The translations under genes and the position numbers were made by a program. This document shows positions 83-63,055 of a DNA stretch of 64,000 nucleotides, piece by piece (positions within the stretch are counted from its first letter, which is position 1; each line of letters begins with the position of its first letter). The notes beneath the pieces are model-generated. The model saw only the letters and a program-made list of their open reading frames with translations, ran no database searches and had not been told where the DNA came from. The DNA comes from Octopus bimaculoides (taxonomy: Eukaryota). The stretch is from positions 51,728,921 to 51,792,920 of the forward strand of contig NC_068988.1 in assembly GCF_001194135.2 (NCBI RefSeq), written 5' to 3'.

Positions 83-3000
83 CTACAATCAAATGGAAAA
101 CAACAAAAATTAATAAATGTTTCAACACAACATTTGCACACAATACTCATCCCCCATAGTTACAGAAATTTCAAATCATTTCACCAACAATCTCATAACT
201 AATAAACTACTGCCACAAATTTCTCATGAAATTCTTGCATTAGATTTGAACTCGCATGCTATTGGTCCAACACATCTACTTCACCCAATTCACTTCTTTA
301 ATGAAAGTGGAATCAACTTATTTCACCCCTCCTGTATCTATGTAAAACATTTGTTCTTCTATAGAACTGTATCGTTTCATAAATCCAGTCATAAATGGGA
401 CATCAATTATGTTCAGACAATGAATTTTTCCAGTTTGCCATTTGTAAAGCAGTAAAATTAGATTTGATAATCCAAAGTTATTTGCTACACCAGCTCCAAA
501 TTGAACTGAAAAATTTCAGATTACAATTAAAATGGTCTGATTGATTAAATACATTTTGATATTTAACTTTCTCTTCACCATTCTGAATTCAAAACCTTAC
601 TGGGATGAATTTAGCCTTCCACTTTCCTGAAGTCAATGCAATAAGTATCAGTAAAGTTGCGGTCCATGTAAATTTTGTGTTGATGCTCATCTCAGAAATC
701 TTTGTTAGAACTTTTAGCAGAGTATTAACTGACAGTAAACAATGGACAGAGAACATCAAGTACAATTAAGATAATGAAGTTTATTATATCACTGCAAAAT
801 CGCCCTCCCATGAAAATGCTACAATTAGAAGTCAAGTCCTTACCAAATCTCCCGATCGCAGTAGTAGTAGTGTATTGGTTCAGGCATACCATTGAATTGA
901 GAAGACACACAGAAAGTGTATGCTCCCATATTCTCAAAGTAAAGCCAATCACCAACTTTCATAGCTGGAAGCTGACAGTCTGTCAGGATACAGTCCAAGC
1001 CATCACAAGTAGGGCCCCAAACGCTAGAGCTGTACAACATATCGACATCAGACAGGTCCTGCAAGAAACAAAATGTATGTTATTAGATAAATGTTCCAGC
1101 AATGATGTTAAATATTAAGTCAGTGGGAAGAGGTTTTCCACAACCATAAAAAGTAGGATCATTGAAAAAAGGGAAAAAGCAAGCTCAGGTATGAAGGTTA
1201 AGAAATAAATATGAAATACTGGCTCTAATATTATGTGAAACGTTTTCTCCCCATTTGATTTTAATCCAGTATTGCAAGGCATTACTTTTGAAGATGCTGA
1301 ATGAAAATCTGAAAATAAGCACCTTATACATGAAATGAACATGGGATCCAGATGTACATACAGATCAATCATTGCAGCAGAAAATAAAAGATGTTTAACA
1401 TTGGCCGTGAAAAATTACAAAATACACTCGTTTGATTAGCAGATATTTACAGGTGTAGAGAAACCCCTGATATATCCAATTACCTAACCAATTTCATTCT
1501 AATAGTGTCATTTCCTATACCATGCACCAAATACTTTGGTTATAATAAAGTTTCATGAAGTAAACAAAAAAAGGGAGAAATAAACAGCTATAGAAGTCAG
1601 GCAACTGATTCTAGGAGTCTCACACATTTGCTCAACCTGCTAGAAATAGCATTCAAGTCTGCTTCAAATTACACCCTGTTGCTTTGGAAGTTGAGGGACA
1701 CATTGGATAATGCACTCCTAGATATGTAATGCCTAAAGAGGAGGATAGCAAAAGCATAGCTTGAATGTCAAAAGGTAACTTTGAGATAAACAATTGATGA
1801 AATCAATTAATAGTATTTTTTTAATTAGATCAACTAAATACACAACCTTCAATGAATGTTTAACACTTTAGAAGAGAAGTAACCATAGTTGTGGATGAAA
1901 TGGAGACTTTTAGATGAAATTTTCAAAAATGAAATTATAATGTTAGTAGACTTTAAATGATGGAAGATAGGATCTAGGAAGATACAAAGCAATCAACTTC
2001 GTCCACGTTTTCAGAACATAGATGTAATAATTAGGGTATTTAACATCTTTGTTATTGCATTCAGTGGTCAAAAACCCAATTCCTACAACTAGTGTCAATC
2101 TGAACCATGGGTTCAAATTTTGCAACAGCCACTGTGTTTTAAGCAACATACATAATCAGTTTGTGTCATCCCAAATAGCTGAGAAATAATATCTTTTTCC
2201 CATTTTATAGTTGTATAATAGTGGCCATTAGGTCATCTAGTTGTAAATAAGAATGCAAAACTATTAAAAATATACAAATTTGGTTTGCAAACATCTTATG
2301 TTCTGTTTCACTGAGACCCCATGTTCTCAGGCCTAAAGGGTAAAGAAAGAAAAGAGGAAGACAGAAGGAAGAAACATTTAGTTTAAGAAATAGGGATCAC
2401 GTGGACGGATTTGGGAGATTACAAAGCAAGTGGAAACTAAAAGGGACATCTCACCTTATCCTTGTTCCATGATGAACAAACCTGAGAAAAAGCAAGTAAC
2501 TTGCTTCAGAAATGCTAAACGGATGAAGAACTGAAGGTAAATTTCATCAATAAAACTTATTCAGTACTCTGTACCATTTTGTCAACATGGCAAAGTTCAG
2601 TACATTTTTTTCGATGCATGCATGTTTTTGTGATGCTATAGTAATCTATCTAATGGCAATGTGATGTGCAGCTATGATAATTCCTAACTATCTTTTTTTA
2701 TCCAAGAAGATAGACCTAACTTTCATTAGATAAAAATAGGTACTTTATATATGAATACAGAGGAAAAGAAAATACATATAAAAGAGAAAGAGATACAAAG
2801 ATATTTACCTGGATTACACTCGGAAACACTTTGGCATGGTCCAGCAAGATACAGTTGAAGGAGCCATAAACACCATCATTGACATAGTACATGAAATGGG
2901 GTTCGTCATTTGCATCCGGCTCCCTGTCTGCACCTTCAAAGAAAAGAGCTTCTTTATTAAGCAAAATAGTGACAGTAGATGAAAAGAAACAAGGAAATTT

Positions 3001-10700: not shown

Positions 10701-10981
10701 CAAATATGAAAAGCGAAGTTGACCCCCAACAAGATTTGAATTTAGAATGTAGAGACATCCACCAACATATTGGTAAGGCATTTTGTCAGCTGATCCACAA
10801 ATTTTGACATCTACCACTTTGGGTTTTAAGAACAACAAATCAACTATAAAGAACTTACCGTTTTTTTGCGATCTTCTATCAGTTGAGCTACAAGCTCCTT
10901 GTGGGAAGGATTGGGAAGCAGTTCTGGGACTACGATGTTCATTTGGCGTCTCATAATTTCGGAGGAATCTTCAAGCGGCAT
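1..10981 (-). CDS. ODC1: Ornithine decarboxylase (fold-type III PLP enzyme), 10 coding exons, 3'-partial; join of exons listed separately; >=452 aa
   Basis: Manual splicing gives one open frame with GT-AG introns of matching phase. Motifs: PFYAVKCN (PLP Lys), [71 protein letters not shown]. The residues equivalent to K69, D88, H197, E274, C360, D361 and Y389 are present, favouring active ODC over antizyme inhibitor. Confidence 0.96.
844..1058 (-). CDS. ODC1: ODC coding exon 9: [22 protein letters not shown]...[27 protein letters not shown](W)
   Basis: ttgtttcttgcag|GAC ... ATT TG|gtaagg; contains WGPTCD (catalytic Cys). Confidence 0.95.
2809..2933 (-). CDS. ODC1: ODC coding exon 8: (G)[41 protein letters not shown]
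   Basis: ttttctttgaag|GT ... CAG|gtaaat; [13 protein letters not shown] motif. Confidence 0.95.
3411..3570 (-). CDS. ODC1: ODC coding exon 7: [53 protein letters not shown]
   Basis: ctctcttttctag|ATT ... CTT G|gtaagg; AEPGRY motif. Confidence 0.95.
3860..4210 (-). mobile_element. RTE-clade LINE 3' fragment
   Basis: Minus-strand translation [24 protein letters not shown]...[20 protein letters not shown] resembles the RTE ORF2 C-terminus (RWYGHV.R....GRP); frameshifted. Confidence 0.7.
4427..4625 (+). mobile_element. Dispersed MITE-like repeat (TTAACC-start); further copies about 6290-6503 (+) and 16936-17150 (-)
   Basis: Three recognisably similar ~200-bp copies (agcattcagattact..tcaaatgtaatgcttatttattcaca..gagtgagaggct.gatc); ends resemble ttaaccc../..gggttaa (piggyBac-like, inference). 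Confidence 0.6.
4812..4977 (-). CDS. ODC1: ODC coding exon 6: (S)[55 protein letters not shown]
   Basis: attctggttccag|C ... GAG|gtaagt; FHVGSG and DIGGGF motifs. Confidence 0.95.
5908..6045 (-). CDS. ODC1: ODC coding exon 5: (K)[45 protein letters not shown](S)
   Basis: gttctttcttag|A ... GTC AG|gtatgt; LSLKFG motif. Confidence 0.95.
6756..6928 (-). CDS. ODC1: ODC coding exon 4: [57 protein letters not shown](K)
   Basis: cttttttcacag|ACT ... GCC AA|gtaaat; IIYANPCK and MTFDNETEL motifs. Confidence 0.95.
9041..9117 (-). CDS. ODC1: ODC coding exon 3: (A)[25 protein letters not shown]
   Basis: gtttactttcag|CT ... ATG|gtgagt; PLP-binding VKCN and GFDCAS. Confidence 0.95.
9710..9880 (+). repeat. 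Dispersed repeat (ccatgctggcatgg...gctggatgcccttcctaa...gtactgggtgcttttta); second copy about 23138-23305
   Basis: Two similar copies in the window; retroposon 3'-tail-like. Confidence 0.65.
9939..10035 (-). CDS. ODC1: ODC coding exon 2: [32 protein letters not shown]
   Basis: ttttgttctacag|GGA ... TAT G|gtaagt; resembles the ODC DAFY..DLGDI...W...LPR..PFY segment. Confidence 0.93.
10859..10981 (-). CDS. ODC1: ODC coding exon 1 (coding part; exon acceptor at 11014): [41 protein letters not shown]
   Basis: catcttgctttcag|ATT at 11014; first in-frame ATG at 10981; ACG|gtaagt phase-0 donor matches the next exon. The start could instead be Met10 or Met14. Confidence 0.85.
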
Positions 10982-12419
10982 AGAGAGGAGTGATCAAGTA
11001 ATAATACAAACAATCTGAAAGCAAGATGGAAAAAATATTAAAATGGAAATACTCGAAGGAAAAATAAAAAATAAAATTACTCTGAAATTTGAAAATGAGT
11101 AACAGAAATTTGGATTTATTCTTATTCCAATAAAACTGCATCAAAACTAATATTTCTGTTTGGGACCAGGAAAGTTGCACTATTTTGCAATTGCTTACCC
11201 TCTCTGAAATAAGACAATGAAATACTACTCATATTTGGGATGGTGTTTCTATTGTATATGGACACATTCTAGCTAGGAACCAACTCCAGCCCACCTCACC
11301 CCAAGGCAATGTTTCATTCACCCTTAGGTTATGTCAGATATGTCATTTCTTGATTATGTTATCCCTACTGCAATTAGAACAATCTCTGCTCTCTGAACTA
11401 TTTAGCAGGATGTACTCTCTACTCAGACCAATCAGTTTTCTGTGTCTCACTTTTCAAACCTGTACTAATTGCTTCATCCAACCTATCATTTTTTGGAATC
11501 CCACCCTATTTTTCACATTTTGTCTAATTCTTTTGTTACTGTATTTATTTTGAGATGCTCTGTGTTTCTTTCAATTACTTTAAATATAACAAAGAATTTA
11601 GTAAAATAACTTAGTTATCATTCAGCTAGTGTTAGGAACATAAATTGTGACTAAGGTTTGGTGGAAGATTTTAATTCAAAATCTATGTAAACAAGATATT
11701 TTTACTCAGAGCTGAAGCCAGTTTCAGCCGGGTTGGTAACAAAAGGGTTAAACATCTCATCCAACAGATTTTCAAATCGAATATCAACTGCATGTAAACT
11801 CTCTAGTCGCTTTAGAGGTGGGCACTGCCACTAACAAATTATTCCTCTTACTGTGAGCTCTGCACAGTAACAAGTGAAGGTGCCTGACCTTTCAACGTCA
11901 ACTCCAGTTCTGCTGTACCCCTACACAATATTTGGTTTACCTTACTAAAACGGTAATTGCCTTTCTCACTGAACTAAGTTTCAACTGATATTAGGCAAGT
12001 TTTTTAGCTATAACTTCTGCAGACAACTGGAAACTTCAAATCTACCCAATCTGTGTAAATCTGAAATACAGACAGACATATTTTATATATAATGTCAATT
12101 TCCTATTTCAGGATGTGTGTTTATTTTTTTTATAGAGATATGACAGCAAGACAAGAAAGACAAGATCAAAGGAAAAACAAGGTATTTATTTTATTGTCCT
12201 ACAATGGCGAATAAAATGTTTAGCCTCCATCTAAGCAAAACAAATATATTATAGAAGTTTTTTTTTGTTTGTTTGAAATGAGCTTTTTCACTGATATCTA
12301 CACTTTCCACCAGTATTTTTAATTGGTTTGACCCCAAAAGAAAGAGTCCTGCATATAGCCTTTACAAGCTGAAATCTGCATTTCCTGGATAGGATGGAAA
12401 TTCTAGAGAGGCAAGGTTC

Positions 12420-15301: not shown

Positions 15302-15677
15302 CTGAAAGAAGGCCAACGTTTGAGAAAATCATTATACTGGTCAATGTTTGATTTGATTTGATTTGAAGCCTACACTTCCAACCAATTGCAAATTTTAGAA
15401 CACCTATTTATACATTTGTTTACACTAGTAGTTATTTGTTTAAAGTAAATACAATTGTATTTAAAATCTAGAAAACTTAAAGAATTTGATGGAAAAATGC
15501 CAGGGATGTTTGTGCTTATTTCAAAATTATTGTTTTTTCATATTTCATTAGAATTTTTATGCACAATGTTTTATAAAATAATAGGTTTAGCACCACAAAA
15601 ATTTTGAAATGTTAACTTGTCTGATGCAGCCTTCTAACATAAAAATGTTCTCTATCTCTGAACTTGGTAACAATTAA

Positions 15678-15892
15678 TGGTTTCAAATTTTAGCACAAGG
15701 CCTGCAATTTCAGGGGAAGAGGGAAGGTCAATTACATCAACCCCAGTGTTAATTAGTACTTATTTTATTGAACCTGAAAGGATGAAAGGCCAAGTCAACC
15801 TTGGTGGAATCTGAATTCAGAAAATAAAGACAGATGAAATGTCACAAAGCATTTTGCCTGGTGTGCTAACAATTCTGCCAGCTCACCACCTT
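15678..15892 (-). mobile_element. SINE family A copy (CpG-decayed)
   Basis: Reverse complement of the family with ...ggtcgataaaataagtaccag...ggggtcgatgtaatcgac...gccttgtgcc; many copies in the window. Confidence 0.8.
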
Positions 15893-18425
15893 TGAACTTG
15901 ATGAAAATTAGTGAAAGATATCAAGGAGAGAGGAAGGAAATTGCTAAAGTTTCATATGCAATTCTTTCCTCCTCTATTCCAGCACATGCAGAAAACAAAA
16001 ATCTATTGTCTAAATTTGCAATGCTTTACATATTGGCATAGGTTGGAGGGGTTGTTATGATCCAATTCCTTGTTTGAATTAACACTCTTCAAGTTCAGAT
16101 AGGAGATAACAGTTCTTTTGTCTCTTTTCAAATAAGGAAAACAAAACTTATCCACCAGGAAAAATTAAAAGACTTGTGGCAATTATTAATAACATGTAAG
16201 AAAATGGTATTTTGTTATGCAACCATAATATACTACAATGTATATTAAATGTTTTTTGTAAGTCAATAACGTGTTCTACATCAAGCATCTCAGATATGAA
16301 ATGTAACAAAATCAGTGCTGGCTTTAATTTCTATAGAAAACCTGAACAAATGTTGTAGCAATTATATATACAGAAATGTAGAATACCCAGTAATGAAAAA
16401 TAGAGGGACCAAGGGAAGAGTTCTAATAACCAGATGTTTAACATTGACAAGGTACCTTATTTTTGACTTGGCTGAAGAGCTTCTCACATTGATAATGGAT
16501 TCCTGATTCAGATAACTGAGTTATCACAAAAACTCATATATTATTCAACAGACAACTGTACAACAAACCTTGTGCAATATTAGCAATTACTATATATAAA
16601 TAAAATTGCAAAAAATTTCTAGCACTCAAGAAGATGCAGGTTTTAAGATTAATCAGCTCTAGTGTGCTTGGTATTAGCAGAATAAAATCATTTTTGTAGA
16701 AAGCTGATTTACAAGTCGAAATGAATAATGTATAAAAATTAAAATAACAAGGTAAATGTATGTGTAATTGTGTTTTAAGTATTAAAAAGAATGCTAAATA
16801 ACACAAAATTTGTTCTAGGCAGATCATTAATGTGATGAAAGATGGCAAGAATTTCATATTGTACATGAATTTTTAACAAGTCATGATTGAAAGACAAGAG
16901 GAATGACTGATGGCAGTACATTAAACAGTGTTTAGACTTTAACTCTTCAGCATTTAAACTGGCCATATCCAATGTAAATATTCTGCCTTGTTTTATGTAT
17001 AAACTGGCCCGATTCAGCCCCTTATGCATTCGCTACAATGTCATTCCGAAAATAAAAACACTCATATCATCACAATCTTGAAGTTACAAGACAATACTTG
17101 GTCAACTGAATACAATGTGAATAAATAAGCATTACATTTGACAGAGTAGTCAACCATATTATTCATATTTAGCCAAAGCCAGCTCATCTGTAGCATATTT
17201 CTGGTACTTGCTTTATTGACTCAAGAGTGATAACAGTCAAGGTCAGTTGCAGAGGAATAAGTAGTAGAATCAAACACAGAATGATGAGTACTACTAATCA
17301 GACACAAACAAAAATGTGTATTCTGATGAGTTAAGATTTGTCCATACAGTTTCTTTATGGCCAGATGCTTTTTCTTTTGCCAAACTTTATGTATTCCCAA
17401 GCAATCTAATATTTTCCCCTAGCTTGGACTGCAAACAAACATCACTGATTATATGATGGTGAAATTTGTTTCTTATTAGATTGCAATGTTAAGACAAGGA
17501 AACTCAGTCTCTGTCTTCGAAATTCACTATAATCATTAGTAAACAATTTAGTGGGTGTACTTAGGAATGGGATGCTACCAAGATTGTTCCAATCCTAAAG
17601 TAAAATTCTGGCGACATTCTTAACTTGAAAGAAAATTCACTATTAGATTAGGTAAGGTATCCGAGCAGCACTATCCCTAACCACATAGGCAAACATCTAT
17701 ACAATTACCTCAAACAACTAGCATTGAGGAATGAGTGCAAATTTGTAAAGAATACAAACTAATATTTATTTATCACGGAATATTACTAAATAGTATTTAT
17801 TGTTGCAGAAACTGTTGTGGTAGAATTAAACTCTTCTTTTGGGAATATAATAAGATATATTCAAGGATACAGACATATACTTATATATGTAAACACATTG
17901 CACATACACATACATAAATACATGCTTCACGACAAATAAGTGTGTATATTTACAAGACTGTAAAAGAAGTGTCTTTAAATGTATAAAAACATTGTCTGAA
18001 TGAAGGACTCAATACATGTGCCAAGTCTATATTGATTATAATTCAATTGATAGCAACTTCAAACAATTTTGTGGGTGTGTGTGTAGACATACACACATAA
18101 CTTTTATGCCTGCTCTCTCTGCTGGCAAGAGTAGGATGAATCATCACAATATGAGTCAGTTCTTATACAACATTACTGCTTTTCCACATTGATCATGCCT
18201 CATTCCAGTGTTCTGTTTCGGCATTATTTCTACACCTGGGTGTCCTACAATAACATCAACCAATTCAAAGTGTGCTGGATGCACTTTATCATGGCACTGT
18301 ACAGGAGATGTCAAGTCTTCGAACAAATTTAAGAATCTTCTCTACATTATCTCACTTTACAGAGTGTATTGAGTCCATCTTTTCATGGAACTAGTACTAT
18401 TATTATTATGTTGTTATTATTAATA

Positions 18426-21088: not shown

Positions 21089-21223
21089 CTGGCCAATAGG
21101 AACACCTGCACTCAGCCGATGCTAGCTGGGATCCCACGGTGGCTCTGCGTTGAAGTTGAATTTCCGCTTGAAATGGCAGAAGCCTTCGGGATTTTCTATG
21201 TAATAAAGACCAGAACAGCCGCC
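21089..21223 (-). other. ODC1: ODC 5' leader exon 2 (carries uCC stop)
   Basis: Strong acceptor and GTGAGA donor; no AUG in the 66 nt between the uCC stop and the main AUG after splicing to 11014. Confidence 0.88.
21122..21223 (-). CDS. uCC (upstream conserved coding region) 3' part: GGCSGLYYIENPEGFCHFKRKFNFNAEPPWDPS*
   Basis: Leader exon 21089..21223 (tgtttttttcag|GGC ... CAG|gtgaga). The C-terminus FNFNAEPPWDPS* matches the AZIN1/ODC uCC end FDFNAEPPWEPS* (recalled). Confidence 0.92.
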   Translation of the reverse strand, partial: GGCSGLYYIENPEGFCHFKRKFNFNAEPPWDPS

Positions 21224-24200: not shown

Positions 24201-24999
24201 GGGAAAATATAAGTACTGGAGTTGATTCATTAAATTAAAACTCTTCAAAGTATTGCTCTACCATGGCTGCAGTCTAACGGGTAAAAAATGTGAGATAAAT
24301 TGTGTTTTGGCCTTGATTGTTTTTGTTTGTGTGTAATAATGAATTTAGGACCACATCATTCAATATACAGTTTTGTTTTTGAGATGGCAGGATATAATTA
24401 AGATTTGACTGCTCTTTCTAGCAGATCAAGCAAACACATAAGCCCCTGCTTTGGTTAGTTTTGGCTACAAGCTATGTAAAATTTTAATAGAATGGAACCA
24501 CCTAGTAGATTTTGAATTACATTTCAGTTGCACATGGTTACCTCTTAACTATTAAGTCTGACTTAATAAAATAAATGACTGAGGTTATAATTAGAGATAC
24601 CAACTGAAAGAAAAAAGAATTTCATTGTGAAAAATCTAATCAGAAATACTATGCTGTGAGTGAGGGGGGGGGGAGACTTCACTGTTGTTGATATTAATCC
24701 ATCTAAGAATTTAGAACAAGTATTATTAATGAGTCAGTTATAGACACCATTTTACAGAAATAAAGAAAATTCATCCAAAATAATTCTATTTGATGTTTAG
24801 AAAAACAATATTCATTTCTTACAATGTATATAAAAACAAAATGGTTGATTGAGAGAAATAAAAGCTACATAACTCACAATAGGAATCTATTGTAAGCTAT
24901 GTATCTTTAATTAACAATCCACTACCACCATGGTGAACACCATAGGGAAAGAGGTAAGCTTCCAGCAAACTGAAACCATAGATAATTCACTTCACTTAC

Positions 25000-25181
25000 A
25001 CTACTAAGCTTTTTGGAGAGGACTTTTGTGCCTAGTCAAAAAGTAAAGCGATATTTCATCACGTCTTGCGTTAGCTGCTGCAGAAGTTCCATCTTTTCCT
25101 TCGTCTTTAAGCCCCAACTACCACCTGGTGCCTGGTGATGAATAGAGAGCTTTGGCCGTGCGTAAATGGCAAGTACAGAAG
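25000..25181 (-). other. Candidate alternative (cassette) leader exon of ODC, 182 nt
   Basis: ttttccatactctctgcag|C acceptor, AGT|gtaagt donor, more GC-rich than the flanking intron; no transcript evidence available. Confidence 0.5.
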
Positions 25182-25364
25182 CTGCAGAGAGTATGGAAAA
25201 TACAAACAGGTAGAGATGTGGAAGTTACCAAATCTATCAACTTTCAAGCAAAAGCAAAATTACAAGTATATATTTCATTTTCCCTACATCTCACAAACGA
25301 ATCCCAACAAGCTTGCCTGCTAAAGTGATTCATAAGCCATGCTGTATGTATGTATATGTGTGTT

Positions 25365-25420
<56 letters not shown>

Positions 25421-27526
25421 CACACACACAGCATGGTACATTTGGTTTCCTTCACTGGTTATGCTATTCTCTGATAAAGATTACAAAACAATAAGACTTA
25501 AATAGAAAGTGAGTGCATTTCCCTGATAATTCACAATTGAAATCACTGCCTACATTTTGTTTTAATAGATAATATTAAAAATGTGATTGCACAACATTCT
25601 GAAATAGCTTACTTGATATGATAATCGTGCATATATACTTGACATATAAATAAAGTATTATTATATATTCAACATAGTTCTTCATAAAAATACCAAAGTC
25701 TTCCCAAAATTCCATATTCCTAGCCCACTTTCACATGAAAGCTTACACTTAAGACTTATACTTTATGAAAAACTATTGCAGCTTTTAAATCTGCAGCACT
25801 GCCTAACTCGGCAAATAGTTTTAGGTAATTGCCACCTTATAAGGTTGGCAGAAGAAAAGGAAAAGTACACATCTACAAAATTCCTTCACAATATCAATGC
25901 TAGCTTCTAAAATCAGTCTCAGCTAATTCCTTTGACACTTAAACTATAATACTACTACAATGAATACAAACTAGATCTTTAAAATATACTTATAAAAAGC
26001 AATATTTACATAAAGCAAAACTAGAAAGTATCTTATATTCTAGGTTTAATTACATTGGTTTACTGAGATACCATGAAAGTACCCTAACACTGTTACTTTG
26101 TGTAGCCATTGTTCCTACCTTATCATACTTGAACAAGCTGTTGCTATTGAAAAACTGAAATTCCAACCATCAACAGTGAAAGAGCAACAAGTGGTCTATT
26201 CAAACTTACAGAAAGAAAAACAGCAATGGACTCAGTAATAGGGTAAGAAACAGGCAGTGCAAATTCAGCATGTACATGCTTCTAAGTGGTACTAAGAGCA
26301 CTAACATAATAGTATACACAATCAATTTGAAACCTACAAGTTTTGATTGATGGTCATTGTTTAGACCAGGTCATATCTGAAGAAGCAGATCTGACAAAAG
26401 GCAATATAGGCCATAACAGTTCTGTCTTTCTTCATCAAACTATTTTATCCAATATGTACCTCCATTTTTAAGACACTGGGAGGCTTGTTAGTTAAATTTA
26501 GCAGATCGAAAGCTATCATCTTGTGAATGTTGATGGCTCTGAAAAATGTGATTTGATAAGGACGGAGTAAAGGGCCAAAAGAAACTTGTAGATGAAATAT
26601 GATTCAAGTTCCTATTTTCCCTTTATATCATATCATTTCAAGCCTATGACCCTAATTATATATATATATTTTTATCAAAACTTTTGTCTATGCTGTCAAT
26701 ATCACTTGAATATGCCTTGAACGTGAGGTAGAGATAAGTGTTCACAAACACAAAAGAATAAAGTTAGAAGATTCAGGATAGAATCATTTTATTGTTATTT
26801 ACAAAACTATAACAGATGCAATTAAATTTTAAACAAGTTGAACACGTAACACATGAGAATACAATCAAAGCATTAAAACAAAAAAGCTAATACTATTATG
26901 GACATTCATTTTAGCAATCAGCAGTTAGCTTCCATATAACTGAAAGATTTCCAACTTTGGCACAAGGGTATAAGCTAACTTTACTCGACATCAGTGCACG
27001 ACTTATTTTATCGACAGGAGACGAATGAGAGAAAACTGACATAGTAAAGAGATAAAAGAAAGAACAACTATGTTATTCAATAAAATTCTGTCTATTTCTA
27101 CAATCAGACTTCACAATCAGACTTCAAATAATTAAATAACGAGTTGATTGATACTGGATAAAACGTATTTTTGAAATAGGCAATCTTGTGATTAAGGATT
27201 AGTTAGTACTACAGGCAAAACACGGAGGCAGAAAGAGAAAAAAATAAAGGTAGTAAATAAGTTGTATTTATAATCATAAAATGAGTAAAGGAAGACCATT
27301 TCGAAAGCACATGGCAGCAAAAGCGGAGATAAGTGCTTTAATATTGGGAAAGAGATCAGGCTGTAACTGAAATACCATTTCATTTAAGGCAGTGGTAGAA
27401 TAGTCGAATAAAGCGTTTCCAGGTTCCTCTCCGTTGTAAAAGAAAAAAAACTCTCCACAGCTACTACTACTAGTCATATGCGGCATTATCTACTGCTATG
27501 AAACTAGAAATTGAGGTGGACTTGTT

Positions 27527-32361: not shown

Positions 32362-32579
32362 ATTCTTTTCTACTCTAGGCAGAAGGCCCGAAATTTTGGG
32401 AGAGGGGGGGGGAAGTCGATTAGATCGACATCAGTACGCAACTGGTACTTAATTTATCGACCCCGAAGGATGAAAGCAAAGTCAACCTCGGCGGAATTTG
32501 AATTCAGAACGTAAAGACAGACGAAATACCGCTAAGCATTTCGACCGGTGTACTAACGTTTCTACCAGCTCGCCGCCTT
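32362..32579 (-). mobile_element. SINE family A copy (CpG retained)
   Basis: Same body as 18426 copy, reverse strand. Confidence 0.8.
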
Positions 32580-35154
32580 CTGGATCTGAATAATTGCTGG
32601 AAGTGTTAGCTATATCTCTCTCAAATTACATCCTACTGTCTAGTACATGATATACAAAAAGGTGGGATGATGAACACGATCAGAATGCTTTGATCAATCG
32701 GCCTGCTCGATCAGATTGACCCGAGGGACTAAACAATAAACATGTGTGAATCAGACAGCGGGGGTCCAATTCTTGTTTAGGAGTGTAATAGCAATCGACA
32801 TCATTACTGCCATATACAATAGTAACAGTGGAATGATGTAACAGAACCTCTGGTAGCAGTATTAAAGAAACCCAACTATGGAATCAACAAACACACATTG
32901 CCTGTTGAGTAACAAATTACTTTTACAGGTTGTAGCAGCTTCGTTGTCAAGGAAACAAAGATTGCAATTAACGGAGGTATATTCCTCGAACAAGCCAACA
33001 AATTCTACCATCACTCACAAGCCGTAGTAAGCAAGGTGCACACAGTACACACTGCTGTAAGCTGAAATGAGGATTACTGTATATCATCAGCTAATTAGAC
33101 ATGGAGAACAGACAGGCAACTTTTACTCTGACTATTCAGATTGCTACTGCAGGCGATGGACTAATTAAATATTGTAAAATAATCCTGATTATTATTATTA
33201 TTATTATTATTATTAAGGGAGCTCTCTAAAACGATACAGTCGAAGTATTTGCCCTTAAGCAGACCCTTTCTCACAGCAGGAGGTCTGTCAGTTAGGGAGG
33301 GCAATTCAATTGATAAAAAAACATGCAGTGGGGGACAGCTTTAACACCCACATAAAAACACCGATGATAGTAAGCTACGTTGGTGAGGATATGGAGCGAG
33401 GGGGGTGGGATTTGTACAAGATAAATTAGGACAGGAAGGCAAGGAGACCAGTTGGATCTCATTCATAACTTCTAACAATAGACAGTAAGAGAAAATGTTT
33501 CTTCATTGGGTAGCTTAAGTGGTACTGAAGAGGGAGACTAAATTTTGAAGTAGGGATGGTAAAGAGATATTAGTACAAGGCTGTAAAAGGGGACGTATAT
33601 ACTAAACTAGTTTACACGCAGTACGAAACTTAACATTTTCAAGTGTTTAACACTTCAGCGATTTATTCATCCACCTGCCTCCAGCTTTCAGCCCAAACAA
33701 AGTGAACTGGTTGGTATTGATATAGATTTAACAAAATGGTGTTAGAAATAATGAAATAAAGCTGGTTTAATCCACGTAGATATCACCATAAAGGAATGTC
33801 TGTCGAGAGAGGAGGGGCAGTTAGTAATAATCGAAAGATAAAACGTACAGAAAATTAAGAAATGATGATAACTATAACGTCAGAAAGACATTGGTTAACA
33901 CAATATAAATAATTGTAGGTGATTAACTTGTATTTTAGATTAATCATCCCCCGCACTATTATAGCGCTGGAATATGTGACGATGACAGCAAATAAATTTA
34001 GATGAGCTATTTATTTAGACATTTCATTAATCAAGAAACAGATAATAACGATAGAGAGGTTGACGTAAATAAAATTCGCCCTCACCGCCAAAGGATCGTA
34101 GATTGGGAAAATTGAAAACGACATGTGATGAAATAATGGCGACTGGTCCATGCGTAGTTGGTGCAACAACAGAACAAGGCGGATAATAGGAGGCAACTGA
34201 CAATTTCAATGAGATTGGAAGATATAAACAGCATTATTTATATATCACACACGTTAAATAAAAATTTAACAGCACAACCATTTTGCTACATTGAATTATA
34301 AATGAAAAAAGATGAAGACAGAAAGCTAAAAACGAAATGCGTTCTAATGAGTTATATACAAGAGCTGGAGGTGAAAGCTAGTAAAGAGCCATGTAACCAA
34401 ACCATCTCTAAAATAACTAATGTTAAACGTGATTACAATTATTTTAGTTATTATAACAAAGCTAACAGAACAAAAGAGATAGCCAAAGATGGTCTTCTAT
34501 AAGATGACAAACCATATAAAAAATACTGTCAGGTCTTAAAACCTTGTTCAAGAAGTAAATTATATTTTTCCTTTTATCTACCGTTTCCATTACCAAAATA
34601 TCAATAGTATGGCGATGTTCTTTTTTTTTTTTCTTTTAAATATACTAAGAATAGTAGGAAAGTAAACCAAACGGATTATTAACGATTGGAACAAGAATCT
34701 GAAAGTAAAAGAGACTAAACAGAAAAAAAAAAAGAAAAATTACAGATGGTGACAGATCGAATCACAAGAGTCGCAATGGCACCACCAGCAATATTAGTTA
34801 GCTACAGTAGTAGCAGAAGCAGTATCGCGGTAATAAGAACATAGTAAATGAGTTTAGTAGTAGATGTCTATATATAGCCAAACAGTGAGTTACATACACC
34901 ATGGCGAGAGATAGATAGATGTACAGCTCATTACAGTCAGACTAGACAGACACAATCAGACGATATTCCATTGAGAAAAAGTGTGAGTGTGGGAAAGACA
35001 GACATTAAATGATAATGATGGTAATGATTTCTTGCCCAATATAAAATAACGTTTGCGTTTTGCAGTATGTTTACACATGCACACACATGTGTATAGGGCT
35101 GTATGTCAGTGTCTCATCTCATCCCCTCTGTAAGTAGAGGGTAGGAACAAATAC

Positions 35155-35201
<47 letters not shown>

Positions 35202-35545
35202 CATATGTACGTATGTATACACACACATTATGTACTCATAAAAATAAGAGCCAGCAATAAAAATCAATAATGCTAAATGGCTACGTAGACAGAGAGAGAG
35301 AGTGAGAGGCTCTCAGCAATTACAATCTGACCGATCACACATACATAAGTATATGCAGGTCTGTCTCTCACATANNNNNNNNNNACACATTATGTACTCA
35401 TAAAAATAAGAGCCAGCAATAAAAATCAATAATGCTAAATGGCTACGTAGACAGAGAGAGAGAGTGAGAGGCTCTCAGCAATTACAATCTGACCGATCAC
35501 ACATACATAAGTATATGCAGGTCTGTCTCTCACATACGTACGTAC

Positions 35546-37265: not shown

Positions 37266-37313
37266 CTGAACAGAAGCTCCACAACCGTTCTCCTTACTGT
37301 TTTTCCCCGGAAT
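37266..37313 (-). CDS. uCC 5' part, AUU-initiated: IPGKNSKENGCGASVQ
   Basis: aagATTccg (-3 A; ATT-CCG start as in the AZIN1 uCC); 16 codons then CAG|gtaaat phase-0 donor, in frame with 21223; in-frame TAG 6 codons upstream, so no AUG can start it. Confidence 0.82.
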
Positions 37314-37328
37314 CTTGCTGATTGTGGA

Positions 37329-37345
37329 CTAACACATTAAAGCAT
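37329..37345 (-). promoter_or_regulatory. Two overlapping minimal uORFs ATG-CTT-TAA / ATG-TGT-TAG (TAATG overlap)
   Basis: Read directly; they are in the mRNA only if the TSS is upstream of 37345. Confidence 0.55.
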
Positions 37346-38665: not shown

Positions 38666-39195
38666 TTTTTTAAAATATATATTTGTACTTCTTTCTGTCA
38701 TTAGACTGCGGCAATGCTATGACACCCCCAGTACCTATACATACATACANNNNNNNNNNNNNNNNNNNNNNNNNNNNNNNNNNNNNNNNNNNNNNNNNNN
38801 NNNNNNNNNNNNNNNNNNNNNNNNNNNNNNNNNNNNNNNNNNNNNNNNNNNNNNNNNNNNNNNNNNNNNNNNNNNNNNNNNNNNNNNNNNNNNNNNNNNN
38901 NNNNNNNNNNNNNNNNNNNNNNNNNNNNNNNNNNNNNNNNNNNNNNNNNNNNNNNNNNNNNNNNNNNNNNNNNNNNNNNNNNNNNNNNNNNNNNNNNNNN
39001 NNNNNNNNNNNNNNNNNNNNNNNNNNNNNNNNNNNNNNNNNNNNNNNNNNNNNNNNNNNNNNNNNNNNNNNNNNNNNNNNNNNNNNNNNNNNNNNNNNNN
39101 NNNNNNNNNNNNNNNNNNNNNNNNNNNNNNNNNNNNNNNNNNNNNNNNNNNNNNNNNNNNNNNNNNNNNNNNNNNNNNNNNNNNNNNNNNNNNNN

Positions 39196-39255
<60 letters not shown>

Positions 39256-41464
39256 TATATTATACTGTAATCTTTATCTACAGGAAGTAAGAGAGACTCA
39301 ATACAATGTAGAATAATTGTATTACATACATACATACACTACAAAATAGAAATAGTGTGCTACATTAAAGTATCACGAGTTGAATTGCAGAGGTCATACT
39401 TTTAATTCAGAGCCACGTTGGCAGTTGGAATTTATACTGATAAGCTATAGCCAGTGATCCTCCGAATTACTGGTCTGACCTAGAGAGTACTATGCAGTTA
39501 ATCTGGTGAAACTTTGAAGTTGCATATAATTTCAGTCTCGTACTATACATGCACACATACATACATACATACATACATACATACATACATACATACATAC
39601 ATACAATATATACATATAGTAAAACACACAGGCACAAACACATACACACACTCATACTCGCACGCACACACACACACATACACACACACAAACACATATC
39701 ACTGTATCTACTGGCCTATCGGACGTTGTTATACACTGCTGGTCACAATGCGCTTCTTCACATTATAGTAGCTTAGTAGCTTTCAAATGATGCCATCCCG
39801 CTGGCAAAGCAGGCAGACGGGCCAACATTATGCTTGAAATGAACGCCAATCCAACGCGGGGAGTTGACTGGAACAATGTGAAATGAAGTGTTTTGCTCTC
39901 AAGAAAACAACGCAACACCTTAAATACAAGGTCACAAGCCTTCATGCACATACAGTACAAACAGACAGACACACACACACACACACATACGCTCACACAT
40001 GCACAAACACGCACACATCCAAACAGACACATACAGGTGTAGCTGTGTGGTAAGAAGTTTGCTTCCTAACCACATGGTTCCGGGTTCAGTCCCCTGTGTG
40101 ACACCTCGGTCAAGTGTCTTCTAATATGGTCTCAAGCATACCAATTCCTTGTGAGTGGATTTGGCAGAGCGAAGAGGAAAGAAGCCCATTTTCTGTCGCG
40201 ACTCAATCTCTTTCTCTATCACTTTTCCCCCTCTCGTTCTTCCTCTGTTACTACTACGTATCTCTCTTTACCCCTCTCGTTCTTCCTTCTGTTACTACTA
40301 TATCTCTCTCTTTACCCCTCGTACTTCCTTCTGTTACTACTATATTCCTCTCTTCCTCTCTTTATCTCGTTGCTCACCTATTCTTCTACTCCTCCCTTTG
40401 TTTCTCCCTCTACCACTCTCTCTCTCTCCCTTACCCCTGCATGGTCACATGCATCCGGTCACTAATCCTTTTCTTCCTTGGCTATCGCCGAGCAAACACG
40501 TGAACTTACTTCGTCCTCACTTTCAAGTTCGTGCCTCACAGCGTTCATATACACATAATTTTTCACGTTTGGCCGCATAGCCTTTTCCGTTCGCTTTCCT
40601 GTCTTCTTTTCTTTTCCGTTTGTTTTCCTGTCTTGTTTTTTGTCCGCCACTACATTCCTCCATGGCACAGGTTTAATTTGTGCATACAAATTTAATTTGC
40701 GGTCCATGGGAAGAGCCGTTTTAACGATNNNNNNNNNNNNNNNNNNNNNNNNNNNNNNNNNNNNNNNNNNNNNNNNNNNNNNNNNNNNNNNNNNNNNNNN
40801 NNNNNNNNNNNNNNNNNNNNNNNNNNNNNNNNNNNNNNNNNNNNNNNNNNNNNNNNNNNNNNNNNNNNNNNNNNNNNNNNNNNNNNNNNNNNNNNNNNNN
40901 NNNNNNNNNNNNNNNNNNNNNNNNNNNNNNNNNNNNNNNNNNNNNNNNNNNNNNNNNNNNNNNNNNNNNNNNNNNNNNNNNNNNNNNNNNNNNNNNNNNN
41001 NNNNNNNNNNNNNNNNNNNNNNNNNNNNNNNNNNNNNNNNNNNNNNNAATAAAGTATGTTCTTTTGCACAACTCTTTTTTTAATATAAAAATAACCTCGA
41101 AACCGAGGTCGGGTTGCACAATTTTGAGGTCTTTAGCTTAGGGAGGCAACTCTGCCTGAACAATCTACGTCTTAGAGCATAATGAGAAAATGTTTAAAAT
41201 ACATGGAGTTTTCCCAAGGAATGAAATTTCGAAGATATACTGTCGACTTTATTAGTCTTATTTAGTAGATAATCATTTAATGTGAAGTATGTTTGCTTGT
41301 GTTTTGGTTAGCCCAGAGTTGCCTTTGAAGTGGCAGACCAATCACATAGTTTTTTTTTTTTTTCCTGAAATACTGTAAATCTGTGTCTTTCTTTTGATGA
41401 AAGGGTGTCATTTTAAGAGAGATTTGGCTATCTGTAGTAGCTCAAGTTAGCAGAGACACACTTC

Positions 41465-41496
<32 letters not shown>

Positions 41497-42875
41497 CGTG
41501 TGTGTTCTGTTGTGGAGAAAAAATACAATTTCTCAGAATATTTTGCATAATAATTTTAAAGAAATCTGGACACCTATCTTACTGCTAACCATTCAACTTC
41601 AAATTACAATTGTTAATTGTTGAAAGTCAAGTAGACTGAGATGTACATATAGTGTTATCGTATGGAGTGGAAGTTCAATACGAAGTTTTGAACTCCTTAT
41701 CTTGTGTTTAGTAATCCATTACCTTAAATTTGAAGCCAGTACGTCTTTAAGCATTATTTTACTGGGTTTAGTTTTTCGACCGTCTTCATGATGGGGTATC
41801 ACTTTCAAAAATTTAATTGATCATACTGACCTCAGTACATATTTCAGTCTGTCATTTATTTTACAGATTGCTGCTTGATGAACTGCTAACTTTGAGACAT
41901 AATGGGACACAATAGTTGATTTAACAACAAATGTAAACACACATCGACACACACACGCATTAGGTGCCAGAATGACTGTGTGGTTGAGAAGTTTACTTCC
42001 CAACCACACAGTCATTCTGCATGGTACCTTGTGCAAGTGTTTTCTACTATAGCCTTAGGTCAACCACAAACTTGTGACTGAATTTGGTAGACGTAAACTG
42101 CAGCGTTGTTCATCAGAAAATGACCGAAAAACATGTTTATAAAGAAGAGCTGCTTGCTTCATACTCCTCGTGTGCTGATTGAAAGGAAGAAATAATACAA
42201 TATGGCTGTAGGTCATAACATCTGGGCAACGCCGGGGTGCATTGGTAGTGTGTGTGTGTGTGTGTGTGNNNNNNNNNNNNNNNNNNNNNNNNNNNNNNNN
42301 NNNNNNNNNNNNNNNNNNNNNNNNNNNNNNNNNNNNNNNNNNNNNNNNNNNNNNNNNNNNNNNNNNNNNNNNNNNNNNNNNNNNNNNNNNNNNNNNNNNN
42401 NNNNNNNNNNNNNNNNNNNNNNNNNNNNNNNNNNNNNNNNNNNNNNNNNNNNNNNNNNNNNNNNNNNNNNNNNNNNNNNNNNNNNNNNNNNNNNNNNNNN
42501 NNNNNNNNNNNNNNNNNNNNNNNNNNNNNNNNNNNNNNNNNNNNNNNNNNNNNNNNNNNNNNNNNNNNNNNNNNNNNNNNNNNNNNNNNNNNNNNNNNNN
42601 NNNNNNNNNNNNNNNNNNNNNNNNNNNNNNNNNNNNNNNNNNNNNNNNNNNNNNNNNNNNNNNNNNNNNNNNNNNNNNNNNNNNNNNNNNNNNNNNNNNN
42701 NNNNNNNNNNNNNNNNNNNNNNNNNNNNNATAGTTAAGTTATTTAAAAGAAAGTTGGTCGTCTTCTGTTTGGTTGTTTTTCCTCGCATTCGGTACTAAAT
42801 GTGGTTATTTTGAGAAGTCCAGCGTGTGGCATTATTATTTTTTCTGTAGTAATGCCCATTATATAAATATAAACG

Positions 42876-47517: not shown

Positions 47518-49253
47518 GCTGGGTATGTATTCAAAAGCCGCCAACAAAAAGTCAACTATTTGTTATTCATGGATGACCTCAAACTTTATGGTAAAGATGA
47601 AGCTCAGGTCAGTTCCCTCGTTGATACGGTGTATACCTTCAGTGCTGATATCAGAATGGAGTTCGGACTGAGAAAGTGTGGTGTGTTAGTCTTGAAGAGA
47701 GGCAAAAACAAATGTATGAACGAGCTAACGATACCGTCGGGAGAGGTTATGAAACAGATAGAAGAGACGGGCTATAAGTACTTGGGGATTTTGGAAATGG
47801 ATAAATTGATGGAGAAAGAAATGACAGAAACATTTAAGGTGGAGTACTTGTGCAGACTGAGACTGATCCTTAAATCGAAATTAAACAGATGGAATAAGAT
47901 TGAAGCTATCAACATTTAGGTGGTTTCACTCTTTAGATATGCAGCAGAGGTAATCGCATGGGCAGTAGACGAACTAAACAGCTTAAACAGAAAGACAAGG
48001 AAGTTGCTAACTAGATATGGGACACTCCACCCAAAAAGTGACACAGACAGACTGTATGTACCAAGAAAAAGAGGGGGAAGAGGACTTATTGGATGTGAGC
48101 ACAATATTAGAGTAGGAGAAAACAACATAGTATGGTATGTAAAAATTGTCACAGAACCGCTAACATTAGAAGTAAGACGGTCAGGCTTGTGTAGGATGAA
48201 AGATTGCAAAGATAAAGCACTGTACAAGCAATTGAAAATGAATGAAACTGAAAATAGGTGGGCAAAGAAAAGAATGTATGGACAATTTCATAGGGATGTT
48301 GAAGATAAGACATACAGAGAAAAAAGATGGCTGTAGATGACTAAAAGTGATTTAGAACCGGAAACGGAGTCTCTAATCTGTGCTGCTCAAGAGCAAGCAC
48401 TAAGAACAAACTACATAAAATACAGAATAGACAACAAATCAGAAAGTGATAAGTACAGAATCTGTGGACAAAAGAATGAAACCGTATGGCATATTACCAG
48501 CCAATGTACGCCACTAGCCCAGAAGGAATATAAGAGACGCCATGACAATATAGCAAGGCTTGTCCATTGGACACTTTGCAACAAGTATGGACGTGACAGA
48601 GCAAAAAATTGGTACGACTATAAACCCGAAGGCATCATAAAAAATAATAATGCAAAGATCCTATGGGATTTTATGATTCAGTGCGACCATAAGATAGAGA
48701 ATAGGAAACCAGACATAGTCTTAATTGAGAAAGAAAACAAACTATGCTGGATTATAGATATAGCATGCCCAACTGAAAACAGGGTATGCGATAAGGAAAA
48801 AAGAAAAGTCGATAGATATGACAGGTTAGCTTGGGAGGTTAAGCAGTTGTAGTCAATGAAAAAGGTAGTAGTAGTACCAATAATTGTCGGAGCCCTGGGA
48901 ACAGTGAGTAAAAATTTTGAGAAGAACATGGAACAAATAGGGGTCGCAATAAGGGTGGAGCACTTGCAGAAAACNNNNNNNNNNNNNNNNNNNNNNNNNN
49001 NNNNNNNNNNNNNNNNNNNNNNNNNNNNNNNNNNNNNNNNNNNNNNNNNNNNNNNNNNNNNNNNNNNNNNNNNNNNNNNNNNNNNNNNNNNNNNNNNNNN
49101 NNNNNNNNNNNNNNNNNNNNNNNNNNNNNNNNNNNNNNNNNNNNNNNNNNNNNNNNNNNNNGTGCTCGAAAAATAAGAGGTGTTACCTTAGTTCACTGGT
49201 AGTGAACAGCTGACACCATAGTACATCTCCAGCGTTAGAAACTGTGCAAAGGC

Positions 49254-49419: not shown

Positions 49420-49499
49420 AACAACAAACAAGATGAGGACAAATATCCGTCAAATGTAAATAATGTAAATAATGTTTATAATCAACCTATTCGTAAATA

Positions 49500-50112
49500 A
49501 TGATTTCAAATTTTTGCACAAGGCTAGAAGTTTCGGAGGAGGGAATAAATTGATTATTGATCCCAGAGTTCAATTGGTACTTATCTTATCGACCCCGAAA
49601 GGAGGGAAGGCATTTGAATTCAGAACATGAAGTTGAAAAAAAATGCCGCTAAGCATTCTTCCCGGGGTGGTAACTTTTCTGTTAGCTTGCCGCCTTAACC
49701 AACCAATAAATATTGATTTCAAATTTTGGCACAAGGCCAGCTATTTCGGGGAAGGAGGTGAATCGATTGCATCGACCCCAGTACTCAACTGGTACTTATT
49801 TGTCGACCCCGAAATGATGAAAGGTAAAGTCAACCTCGGCTTAATTTGAACATAAAGACGGACAAATATCGCGAAGTATTTTGCCCGGCGTGCTAACGAT
49901 TCTGCCAACTCGCTGCCTTCCTACCAGTAGATATTATTTTCTACCATAGGCAATAGGCCTGACAATTTTGGGGGATAGGTGATAGTCGATGTAATCGACC
50001 CCAGTGCTCAAATGGTACTTAATTTATCGACTCGTAAAGAATGTAAAAACAGACGAAATGCCGCTAAGCATTTTGACCGGCGCAGTAACGATTCTGCCAG
50101 CTCGCCGCCTTC
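49500..50112 (-). mobile_element. Three tandem SINE family A copies; other copies about 53858-54030, 56805-57020, 62430-62845 (two tandem), 59550-59635
   Basis: Repeated ttt(g)gcacaaggc...tcgacccc...actggtactt..tttatcgacccc.gaa...gccgctaagcatt..g.ccgg. Confidence 0.8.
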
Positions 50113-52485: not shown

Positions 52486-53237
52486 NNNNNNNNNNNNNNN
52501 NNNNNNNNNNNNNNNNNNNNNNNNNNNNNNNNNNNNNNNNNNNNNNNNNNNNNNNNNNNNNNNNNNNNNNNNNNNNNNNNNNNNNNNNNNNNNNNNNNNN
52601 NNNNNNNNNNNNNNNNNNNNNNNNNNNNNNNNNNNNNNNNNNNNNNNNNNNNNNNNNNNNNNNNNNNNNNNNNNNNNNNNNNNNNNNNNNNNNNNNNNNN
52701 NNNNNNNNNNNNNNNNNNNNNNNNNNNNNNNNNNNNNNNNNNNNNNNNNNNNNNNNNNNNNNNNNNNNNNNNNNNNNNNNNNNNNNNNNNNNNNNNNNNN
52801 NNNNNNNNNNNNNNNNNNNNNNNNNNNNNNNNNNNNNNNNNNNNNNNNNNNNNNNNNNNNNNNNNNNNNNNNNNNNNNNNNNNNNNNNNNNNNNNNNNNN
52901 NNNNNNNNNNNNNNNNNNNNNNNNNNNNNNNNNNNNNNNNNNNNNNNNNNNNNNNNNNNNNNNNNNNNNNNNNNNNNNNNNNNNNNNNNNNNNNNNNNNN
53001 NNNNNNNNNNNNNNNNNNNNNNNNNNNNNNNNNNNNNNNNNNNNNNNNNNNNNNNNNNNNNNNNNNNNNNNNNNNNNNNNNNNNNNNNNNNNNNNNNNNN
53101 NNNNNNNNNNNNNNNNNNNNNNNNNNNNNNNNNNNNNNNNNNNNNNNNNNNNNNNNNNNNNNNNNNNNNNNNNNNNNNNNNNNNNNNNNNNNNNNNNNNN
53201 NNNNNNNNNNNNNNNNNNNNNNNNNNNNNNNNNNNNN
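52486..53237. other. Assembly gap (N); other gaps 35375-35384, 38750-39195, 40729-41047, 42269-42729, 48975-49161, 60259-60571
   Basis: N runs; most abut microsatellites or repeats. Confidence 1.
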
Positions 53238-53297
<60 letters not shown>

Positions 53298-54589
53298 TGT
53301 CACTTAGACATATATGCAAGAAAATACATGAGAACACACCTTTACTCTCGATTGTTTGCCTCAAAGCTTGAGAGCTATGCCAGTAGAGCACAAGCTTCTG
53401 GTCCCATATTGGACAGGTCAAAGGATAGAAGCCAGACTAATGTGGACTACTTCTTCCCAGAGATAAAAGTGAGTATGTGTAGGGCCAACATCCCTCACTA
53501 GAAAAAAATAATGCTAAGTTACCGAGGCTATGATGACAAATCAAAACCAACATGACCTGGGACAGGAAAACTTCTCGTAACGAAACATATGTCGCGGTGC
53601 AACAAAATCTGAAAGGAAGTTGTAAGAAGCCAGGGATCGAACTGGAAAGAAGCGGAAAAGTCAGTCCAAAGTCGAAAGCAGGGGAGAAAAGTGGTCGATG
53701 GTCGATGAATTGTAAGGAATGAGGGATTCAAGTAAGCGAGGGAGCAAGTATGTAAATAAATGAAATACAAATAAAGGAACCAAAAATTTTAAAGAAAAAA
53801 TAAAAAGAGTACAAAAAGAAAATTAGATTAGTTGCACATATTGTCAAGTATTAATTAAGATAATCTTTTCTACTCTAGGCACAAGACCCGAAATTTTTGA
53901 GGAGGGGGCCAGTCGATTAGATCGACCCAGTACGCAACTGGTACTTAATTTATCGATCCCGAAAGGATGAAGGAAAAGTCGACCTCGGCGGAATTTGAAC
54001 TCAGAATGTAAAGACAGACGAAATACCACTAAGTATAAAAATAAAGGAACCAAAAATTTTAAAGGAAAAATAAAAAGAGTACAATAAGAAAATTAGATTA
54101 GTTGTAGTAGTTGCACACATTGTCAAGAATTAATTAATTAAGATAATCAGTAGCTGTCCGGTTGTGTTTTAATATAATGAATTAGAAATGAATTGAACGG
54201 AAAAACAAGAGACTAGAAGAAGGCAAATTATGTTATGAATTATATAACCTGTCAATTGTATTTGGATGTTGAAAGGATTTAAAGAATCAATATGGGTATC
54301 CAATCTCTTTGTCTTTGGATAAAGATGCTTCTTTTTCTCTTTCTTGGAGTTCTCATCACTTTTCAAATTTCTAAAATCTGTCCCTATTTTTATGAGATAC
54401 ATATTTAATACTCTTATAGTTATTTCTAATTCTGGCTTTCAGTTACTGTTGCAATTTTCTGCCACAGAAAAGAAACTAGAGCAAATTATGAGAATATTAA
54501 ACAAAAAAGAAAGAAATGTTTATTCAGAGATTTTTCGCTTACTTGCTGGGTCTGGAGGAAGGGGCAACGCTCACGGCCTTCGCTTCCCC

Positions 54590-62800: not shown

Positions 62801-63055
62801 AGCATTTTGCCCGGTATGCCTACGATTCTGCCTGCTCGCCGCCTTAATACATGTCATTATATTAGCATAACATGAATTATCTCCACTTCCAGAAACGAAA
62901 TTATTTAATTTTTCTTCTTATTGTATAACTTCATCTGAAAATCATTGCAATTGTTTGGCTCTGTATTTAGTCCACCATGAATATCTGTATCATTATTTAT
63001 TTGATCTGCATGAGCTTATATACTGTGTTCATTCTTAAGAATCGCAGCTGCATTT

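Follow-up and report, generated by a model that had tools for sequence, protein, structure and literature searches.

In the ODC gene of Octopus bimaculoides, a 182-nt segment of the 16-kb intron between the two uCC exons, E1 and E2, is probably a conserved, alternatively included 5' leader exon of octopods that would rewire upstream translation. It lies in a 64-kb stretch of genomic DNA, hereafter the window, which carries ODC on its minus strand. The anatomy of the segment and its conservation were observed directly, and are described below together with the gene in which it resides.

The ODC coding exons were located by tblastn with human ODC followed by manual splicing, and they lie on the minus strand between 10981 and the start of the window. 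Positions 20981-1 are 100% identical to the ODC locus (L002) of O. bimaculoides chromosome CM046608.1. The ODC product of the window is 96% identical to Callistoctopus minor ODC and agrees with the O. bimaculoides RefSeq isoforms. Four RefSeq mRNA variants share the protein XP_014767555-7 / XP_052826063. In an O. bimaculoides RNA-seq contig identical to the window (L003), E2 (21223-21089) is joined to E3 (11014 onward), the exon that holds the main ODC AUG. An N-terminally longer ODC, P0131, was considered as a novel isoform and rejected; its TTG start in E2 was chosen by the gene caller.

We also observed the following at this locus. A 27-nt coding micro-exon, VCSSWNKDK (2455-2481, minus strand), lies between the exons 2933-2809 and 1058-844. 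It makes the difference between the ODC isoforms X1 (469 aa) and X2 (460 aa), and is found too in the C. minor, O. sinensis and Argonauta proteins. In O. vulgaris (OX597821.1; L019:1-9972), a separate same-strand gene model of 126 aa is annotated just upstream of ODC. The TGA that terminates this model (frame ...LITPLYAA) overlaps the region where ODC starts, and the O. vulgaris ODC model begins at an internal Met and has 444 aa. The likely origin of the 126-aa model is an ORF call on the ODC leader exons. When the alternative frame of E2 plus E3 was searched against a protein database for this model, no match was returned; short ORFs are evidently unindexed there. SINE-like dispersed repeats (families D6, D8, D9 and D11) are present in many copies, both here (window positions 15673-15893, 32461-32580, 49496-50112, 53958-54036 and 62474-62846) and at the O. 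sinensis locus. Runs of N, which are assembly gaps, occupy 35375-35384, 38750-39195, 40729-41047, 42269-42729, 48975-49161, 52486-53237 and 60259-60571.

Among nascent peptides that sense a metabolite, the uCC of ODC and AZIN mRNAs is a textbook case; its input comes from a leaky start codon. Judged by its sequence, the octopus ODC leader element is an animal-type uCC as described for ODC homologs: it is located in the ODC 5' leader, has adjacent prolines and a Pro-Ser end, and has a near-cognate AUU in good context. The uCCs of ODC and antizyme-inhibitor mRNAs have a non-AUG start (usually AUU), adjacent prolines and a Pro-Ser end, and their C-terminal peptide is the polyamine-sensitive part (PMC2811004). 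The O. bimaculoides counterpart of E1 is at ~37344-37266, with the donor CAG/gtaaat after 37266. The uCC frame in this exon opens after an in-frame TAG (37331-37329), continues through S T I S K, and reaches the putative AUU start at 37313-37311 (context agcaagAUUccg), after which PGKNSKENGCGASVQ follows to the end of E1. After the TAG this frame has an AUC, then the AUU, and is devoid of in-frame AUG. The sequence AGCAAGATTCCGGG is the same in three species. The frame crosses the 16-kb intron, enters E2 in phase 0 at 21223 and, ~49 codons from the AUU, ends in PPWDPS (PPW 21142-21134; TAG stop 21124-21122). The ending AEPPWDPS, followed by the stop, is present in O. bimaculoides, Argonauta, a C. 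minor-like octopus and two more cephalopods. Exon mapping, product identity and leader contigs all bear out the ODC gene and the AUU-uCC of the original prediction, and the uCC is canonical.

Two other features of these leader exons were noted. Just upstream of the AUU, E1 has two minimal AUG uORFs, AUG CUU UAA and AUG UGU UAG (37329-37345, minus strand), the second of which terminates at the same TAG that opens the uCC frame. In related cephalopods (L020-L029), a 10-codon AUG uORF terminates at the equivalent TAG. The minimal uORFs may bear on the delivery of ribosomes to the AUU. In E2, the 33 nt past the uCC stop (GCATCGGCTGAGTGCAGGTGTTCCTATTGGCCAG, 21089-21121, minus strand) are near-invariant in five cephalopods and conserved like the uCC itself, and this sequence conservation suggests that a further element under constraint separates the uCC from the main AUG.

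The candidate cassette (Table 1) begins at 25181, after the acceptor ...ttttccatactctctgcag/C (...ctctctgcag/), and its final base, 25000, precedes the donor (AGT/gtaagt). Inside it, an AUG in optimal context opens the uORF MELLQQLTQDVMKYRFTF, and the stop codon of this uORF is followed by CUAG. When the cassette is placed after E1, the AUU-uCC frame continues into it for 24 codons and reaches a TAA well ahead of PPW. There is no AUG between the cassette uORF and the main ODC AUG, and the distance from the UGA to the main AUG is 204 nt. Read on the minus strand, the coordinates that the original prediction had given for the segment proved correct to the base. The aagATGg, the uORF and the TGA-CTAG were all found at the positions it gave, and the TAA that it expected to truncate the AUU-uCC upon inclusion was found too. 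Frame derivation also bore out its twelve stop-free codons and a phase-0 donor in frame with the PPW exon. As a separate observation, the cassette acceptor and first exon bases (cag/CTTCTGT, 25172-25183, minus strand) echo the end of E1 (gAGCTTCTGTtcag, 37269-37279), and the 9-mer AGCTTCTGT is common to the cassette start and the E1 end; this may be a coincidence.

Table 1. Features of the ODC leader and of the candidate cassette exon (window coordinates)
Feature	Position	Strand	Basis
Leader exon E1, 3' part	37266..37331	-	E1 of related cephalopod transcripts, 86% over 80 nt
Conserved block: cassette, 116 nt of upstream intron and 44 nt of downstream intron	24956..25297	-	Argonauta alignment
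Candidate cassette exon, 182 nt	25000..25181	-	AG/.../GTAAGT borders, also in Argonauta
TAA closing the AUU-uCC frame when the cassette follows E1	25107..25109	-	Frame derivation
AUG uORF, 18 codons plus UGA	25036..25092	-	ATG 25092-25090, context aagATGg
UGA-CUAG stop context	25032..25038	-	TGA 25038-25036, CTAG 25035-25032
Twelve stop-free codons LGTKVLSKKLSS to the phase-0 donor	25000..25035	-	In frame with E2
Leader exon E2, C-terminal part of the uCC (GGCSGLYYIENPEGFCHFKRKFNFNAEPPWDPS, then stop)	21089..21223	-	Transcript contigs L003, L004
Exon E3, main ODC AUG at 10981-10979	10859..11014	-	Exon mapping and transcript contig
Predicted E1-cassette junction: GCTTCTGTTCAG / CTTCTGTACTTGCC			
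Predicted cassette-E2 junction: AAGCTTAGTAGT / GGCGGCTGTTCTGG			

The comparison with orthologs covers one genome, that of the distant octopod Argonauta hians (L018); the O. sinensis (L001) and O. vulgaris (L019) loci end short of E2. The 10-kb upstream flank of the Argonauta ODC extends past E2 because the E2-E3 intron is short in this species (~420 nt, L018:9528-9948, compared to ~10 kb, 21088-11015, in O. bimaculoides). For the cassette-E2 intron it is the reverse, with 6.4 kb in Argonauta and 3.8 kb in O. bimaculoides. When the whole 64-kb window was compared with the sequence upstream of the Argonauta ODC (L018:1-10200), only three conserved blocks were observed. Two of them are E3 (90% identity) and E2 (96%), and the third, window 25297-24956, contains the cassette. 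The latter aligns to L018:2698-3030 with 86% identity over 345 nt. By segment, the identity is 84% in the upstream intron, 90% in the exon before the AUG, 91% in the uORF, 97% in the linker after the stop and 89% in the downstream intron. Just outside the block it falls to 41–51%, so that the flanking intron is unalignable. Perfect runs cover the polypyrimidine tract with its AG (23 nt), the surroundings of the AUG (28 nt), the surroundings of the UGA-CUAG (25 nt) and the donor region (20 nt). Spilling of conservation into the flanking intron is usual for regulated alternative exons. We consider it very likely that this block is under constraint.

The Argonauta cassette is 177 nt long and retains both splice sites and the aagAUGg context. 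Its uORF, MEREQQLTQDEMKYCFTF, has 18 codons as in O. bimaculoides and ends in the identical UGA-CUAG. The linker that follows has 11 codons, LGTKVLSKKLS, to a phase-0 donor in frame with GGCSG...PPWDPS, and differs from that of O. bimaculoides by one synonymous change and one 3-nt deletion. Orthologs without the UGA-CUAG or without the frame would have spoken against the original prediction by its own terms, and A. hians retains both. The E1 frame of Argonauta is likewise closed within the cassette, by a TGA 21 codons into the exon. The indels of the Argonauta cassette are a 2-nt deletion upstream of the AUG, which disrupts any long frame on the opposite strand, and the 3-nt deletion after the stop, which falls in a slippage-prone TAGTAG repeat. 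As read from the alignment, these indels are consistent with a constraint on the frame that acts downstream of the AUG only. Each of the five substitutions in the uORF is non-synonymous, and therefore the uORF peptide is not conserved at the amino-acid level. As the exon is 90–97% identical between the two species, the retained motif and frame are largely to be expected and say little beyond the exon being constrained.

Splice sites were scored with a crude position weight matrix. Scores were 7.8 bits for the cassette acceptor (real ODC exons: 6.5–12.1) and 6.2 bits for its donor (real ODC exons: 4.5–12.2), both towards the bottom of the range. Acceptor-donor pairs that score equally well or better occur at about seven further loci of this 16-kb intron. 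The strength of the cassette splice sites is at chance level and is no evidence for an exon. The interpretation offered in the original prediction was supported for the gene, the uCC, the position and the retention in an ortholog, and not supported for its strong splice sites, which are ordinary. We also estimated, post hoc, how often the uORF arrangement arises in 200,000 dinucleotide shuffles of the 182-nt cassette. Of the shuffles, 0.11% contained an AUG-uORF with TGA-CTAG at its end, and 0.014% the full arrangement, which in addition is in frame and free of stops up to a phase-0 end. Repeat copies of the cassette were absent from the window and from the O. sinensis and O. vulgaris loci.

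In the transcripts of two related cephalopods, whose ODC is 79% identical, the upstream exon E1 is spliced straight to E2 (contigs L005-L011 and L020-L029). None of the 20 leaders with upstream sequence from these two species includes the cassette; all of them join E1 directly to E2. Inclusion is therefore at best minor or condition-specific. The starts of three other RNA-seq contigs bear on the same question. The contigs from O. bimaculoides (L003), from a C. minor-like octopus (L004, whose ODC has C. minor-specific residues) and from a third cephalopod (L012) all have base 1 of E2 as their first base. Contigs of a de Bruijn assembly start where two paths merge. E1 and the intron share the 3' end ...TTCAG, and paths from these two would therefore merge 5 nt upstream of E2. 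A start exactly at base 1 of E2 thus needs a predecessor whose final base is not G; the final base of the cassette is T. These starts are indirect, sequence-based evidence for an alternative upstream partner of E2 in these samples; the cassette is a candidate, not a proven one. Searching 1.84 billion representatives with HMMER for the cassette frame gave one match only, which was spurious (E = 9e-4). A protein-database search with the conceptual cassette-plus-uCC peptide gave no match. Short ORFs are evidently unindexed in this database, and therefore the empty search says nothing on absence. Two ORFs of the window that overlap the cassette had no database record. Overall, it is likely that the conserved block acts as an included leader exon.

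The splicing-in of the cassette and all of its translational consequences are predicted from sequence, as follows. In the common E1-E2 mRNA, rare initiation at the AUU in E1 would feed ribosomes into the uCC, the PPW...PS end of which would serve as a polyamine-sensitive stall, as in the ODC and AZIN1 homologs. In an mRNA that includes the cassette, the AUU frame would stop inside the cassette, so that the leaky-start route to PPW would be closed. Nearly all scanning ribosomes would instead begin at the optimal-context AUG and translate the 18-codon uORF. Most of these would terminate at the UGA, and then either leave the mRNA or resume scanning. Those that resume would reinitiate at the main AUG, 204 nt away; the absence of any AUG in this interval would favour reinitiation. 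A small fraction of the ribosomes could read through the UGA-CUAG into GGCSG...PPWDPS and stall there; some readthrough into the stall peptide is expected because the stop is a UGA-CUAG and is in frame with E2. The net result would be less ODC synthesis, largely uncoupled from the uCC. The cassette isoform may also be subject to NMD (EJC-dependent).

A stronger proposal is that the leaky stop is itself the selected function, with readthrough at UGA-CUAG, possibly raised by polyamines, metering AUG-initiated ribosomes to the PPW stall in place of the AUU. We regard this reading as a live hypothesis, but less likely than not. It draws on the retention of the UGA-CUAG, the frame and the stop-free linker in Argonauta, where a single indel, of 3 nt, follows the AUG and the one substitution beyond the stop leaves the amino acid of the readthrough frame unaltered, as well as on the rarity of the full arrangement among the shuffles (0.014%). 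It also draws on precedents: a preprint presents UGA-CUAG as a recognised readthrough context (bioRxiv 10.1101/2021.04.18.440353), and PMC8831848 describes the order readthrough, stall and queue in the polyamine gene AMD1. However, at 90–97% identity the retention of the motif and frame is about a coin-flip and not independent evidence, the 3-nt indel lies within the TAGTAG repeat, and the shuffle p-value is post hoc. The nearby donor and splicing enhancers would explain conservation of the linker equally well. RNA folding of the 111 nt from the uORF stop into E2 showed nothing unusual (z -0.43), and hence a readthrough-stimulating structure 3' of the stop is absent. To our knowledge, there are no data on readthrough efficiency for molluscs. 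The corresponding broader view is that the cassette defines an ancient octopod ODC isoform in which a leaky stop, instead of a leaky AUU start, gates entry to the PPW stall peptide; splicing would thereby select a second recoding control for the same sensor, and this control might itself respond to polyamines. This view appears doubtful to us at present.

Alternatively, the block could be functional outside the ODC mRNA, as an intronic enhancer or silencer, as a decoy pseudo-exon regulating E1-E2 splicing, or as an undescribed non-coding RNA. That no inclusion junction was found, and that every complete leader recovered is E1-E2, speaks in favour of such a role, and so do the exclusively non-synonymous uORF substitutions (5/5), which imply a constraint on nucleotides rather than on the peptide. 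Yet the edges of the highest conservation match splice sites on the strand of the gene (polypyrimidine-AG acceptor, GTAAGT donor), and Argonauta retains the AUG, the stop and the reading frames. The contig starts point to a second partner of E2 ending in a base other than G. A non-coding RNA is not suggested by Rfam either: no family was matched within the conserved block, and matches were confined to the neighbouring TG/TA microsatellite (25355-25442), where they were below the gathering scores. We regard a role outside the mRNA as improbable. That the segment is a pseudo-exon arisen by chance, the intron being long and AT-rich and the uORF and stop context a coincidence, would accord with the seven or so equal or better acceptor-donor pairs in the same intron, but is very unlikely indeed because the block is conserved in Argonauta (86% over 345 nt), where it is the only non-canonical conserved block and the surrounding intron is unalignable.

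The reading that we prefer, a conserved cassette exon of the ODC leader, may now be compared with known systems. It shares the gene family and the leader element with the ODC/AZIN uCC, and cephalopods conserve the AUU frame ending in PPWDPS. Known uCCs are entered by one route only, the leaky non-AUG start, whereas the octopus cassette would shut the AUU entry and offer an AUG start that is separated from the stall peptide by a stop. In the literature we found no account of a cassette exon inside a uCC, or of cephalopod ODC leaders. If the leaky-stop proposal is true, the same stalling module would be fed by a different recoding event, an AUG and a leaky stop replacing a leaky start, and alternative splicing would be linked to the translational sensing of polyamines. 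Even without readthrough, a conserved uORF-bearing leader exon in cephalopod ODC would be a new regulatory element.

In AMD1, as described in PMC8831848, a minority of ribosomes pass a leaky stop and reach a conserved in-frame stall, and the resulting queue is proposed to block the followers. Both AMD1 and the octopus ODC are polyamine-pathway mRNAs, and in both an in-frame stall site lies downstream of a stop that is leaky in AMD1 and a candidate for readthrough in octopus. The leaky stop of AMD1 terminates the main ORF, with the stall in the 3' UTR; in octopus ODC, both would be in the 5' leader, and in the alternative isoform only. By analogy, the octopus cassette may work like AMD1, though it is not a member of the AMD1 type. 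If true, it would be the first readthrough inside a 5' leader that feeds a regulatory stall, a 5' counterpart of AMD1.

UGA-CUAG is given as the consensus of mammalian readthrough genes in the preprint (bioRxiv 10.1101/2021.04.18.440353). The octopus cassette has the identical seven-base motif, conserved in an ortholog and followed by an open in-frame extension. The mammalian UGA-CUAG readthrough genes reportedly include OPRK1, OPRL1, AQP4 and MAPK10 (Loughran et al. 2014). In the mammalian cases the main protein is extended, whereas the octopus cassette would extend a uORF into a regulatory peptide. Lastly, the 'exon X' of SSAT/SAT1 is said to undergo polyamine-regulated unproductive splicing (Hyvonen et al. 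2006). Both it and the octopus cassette belong to polyamine-pathway genes, and in both a conserved cassette exon leads, or in octopus would lead, to premature termination and lower productive expression. SSAT exon X, however, interrupts the coding region and acts via NMD, whereas the octopus cassette is in the 5' leader and would act, if at all, through upstream translation.
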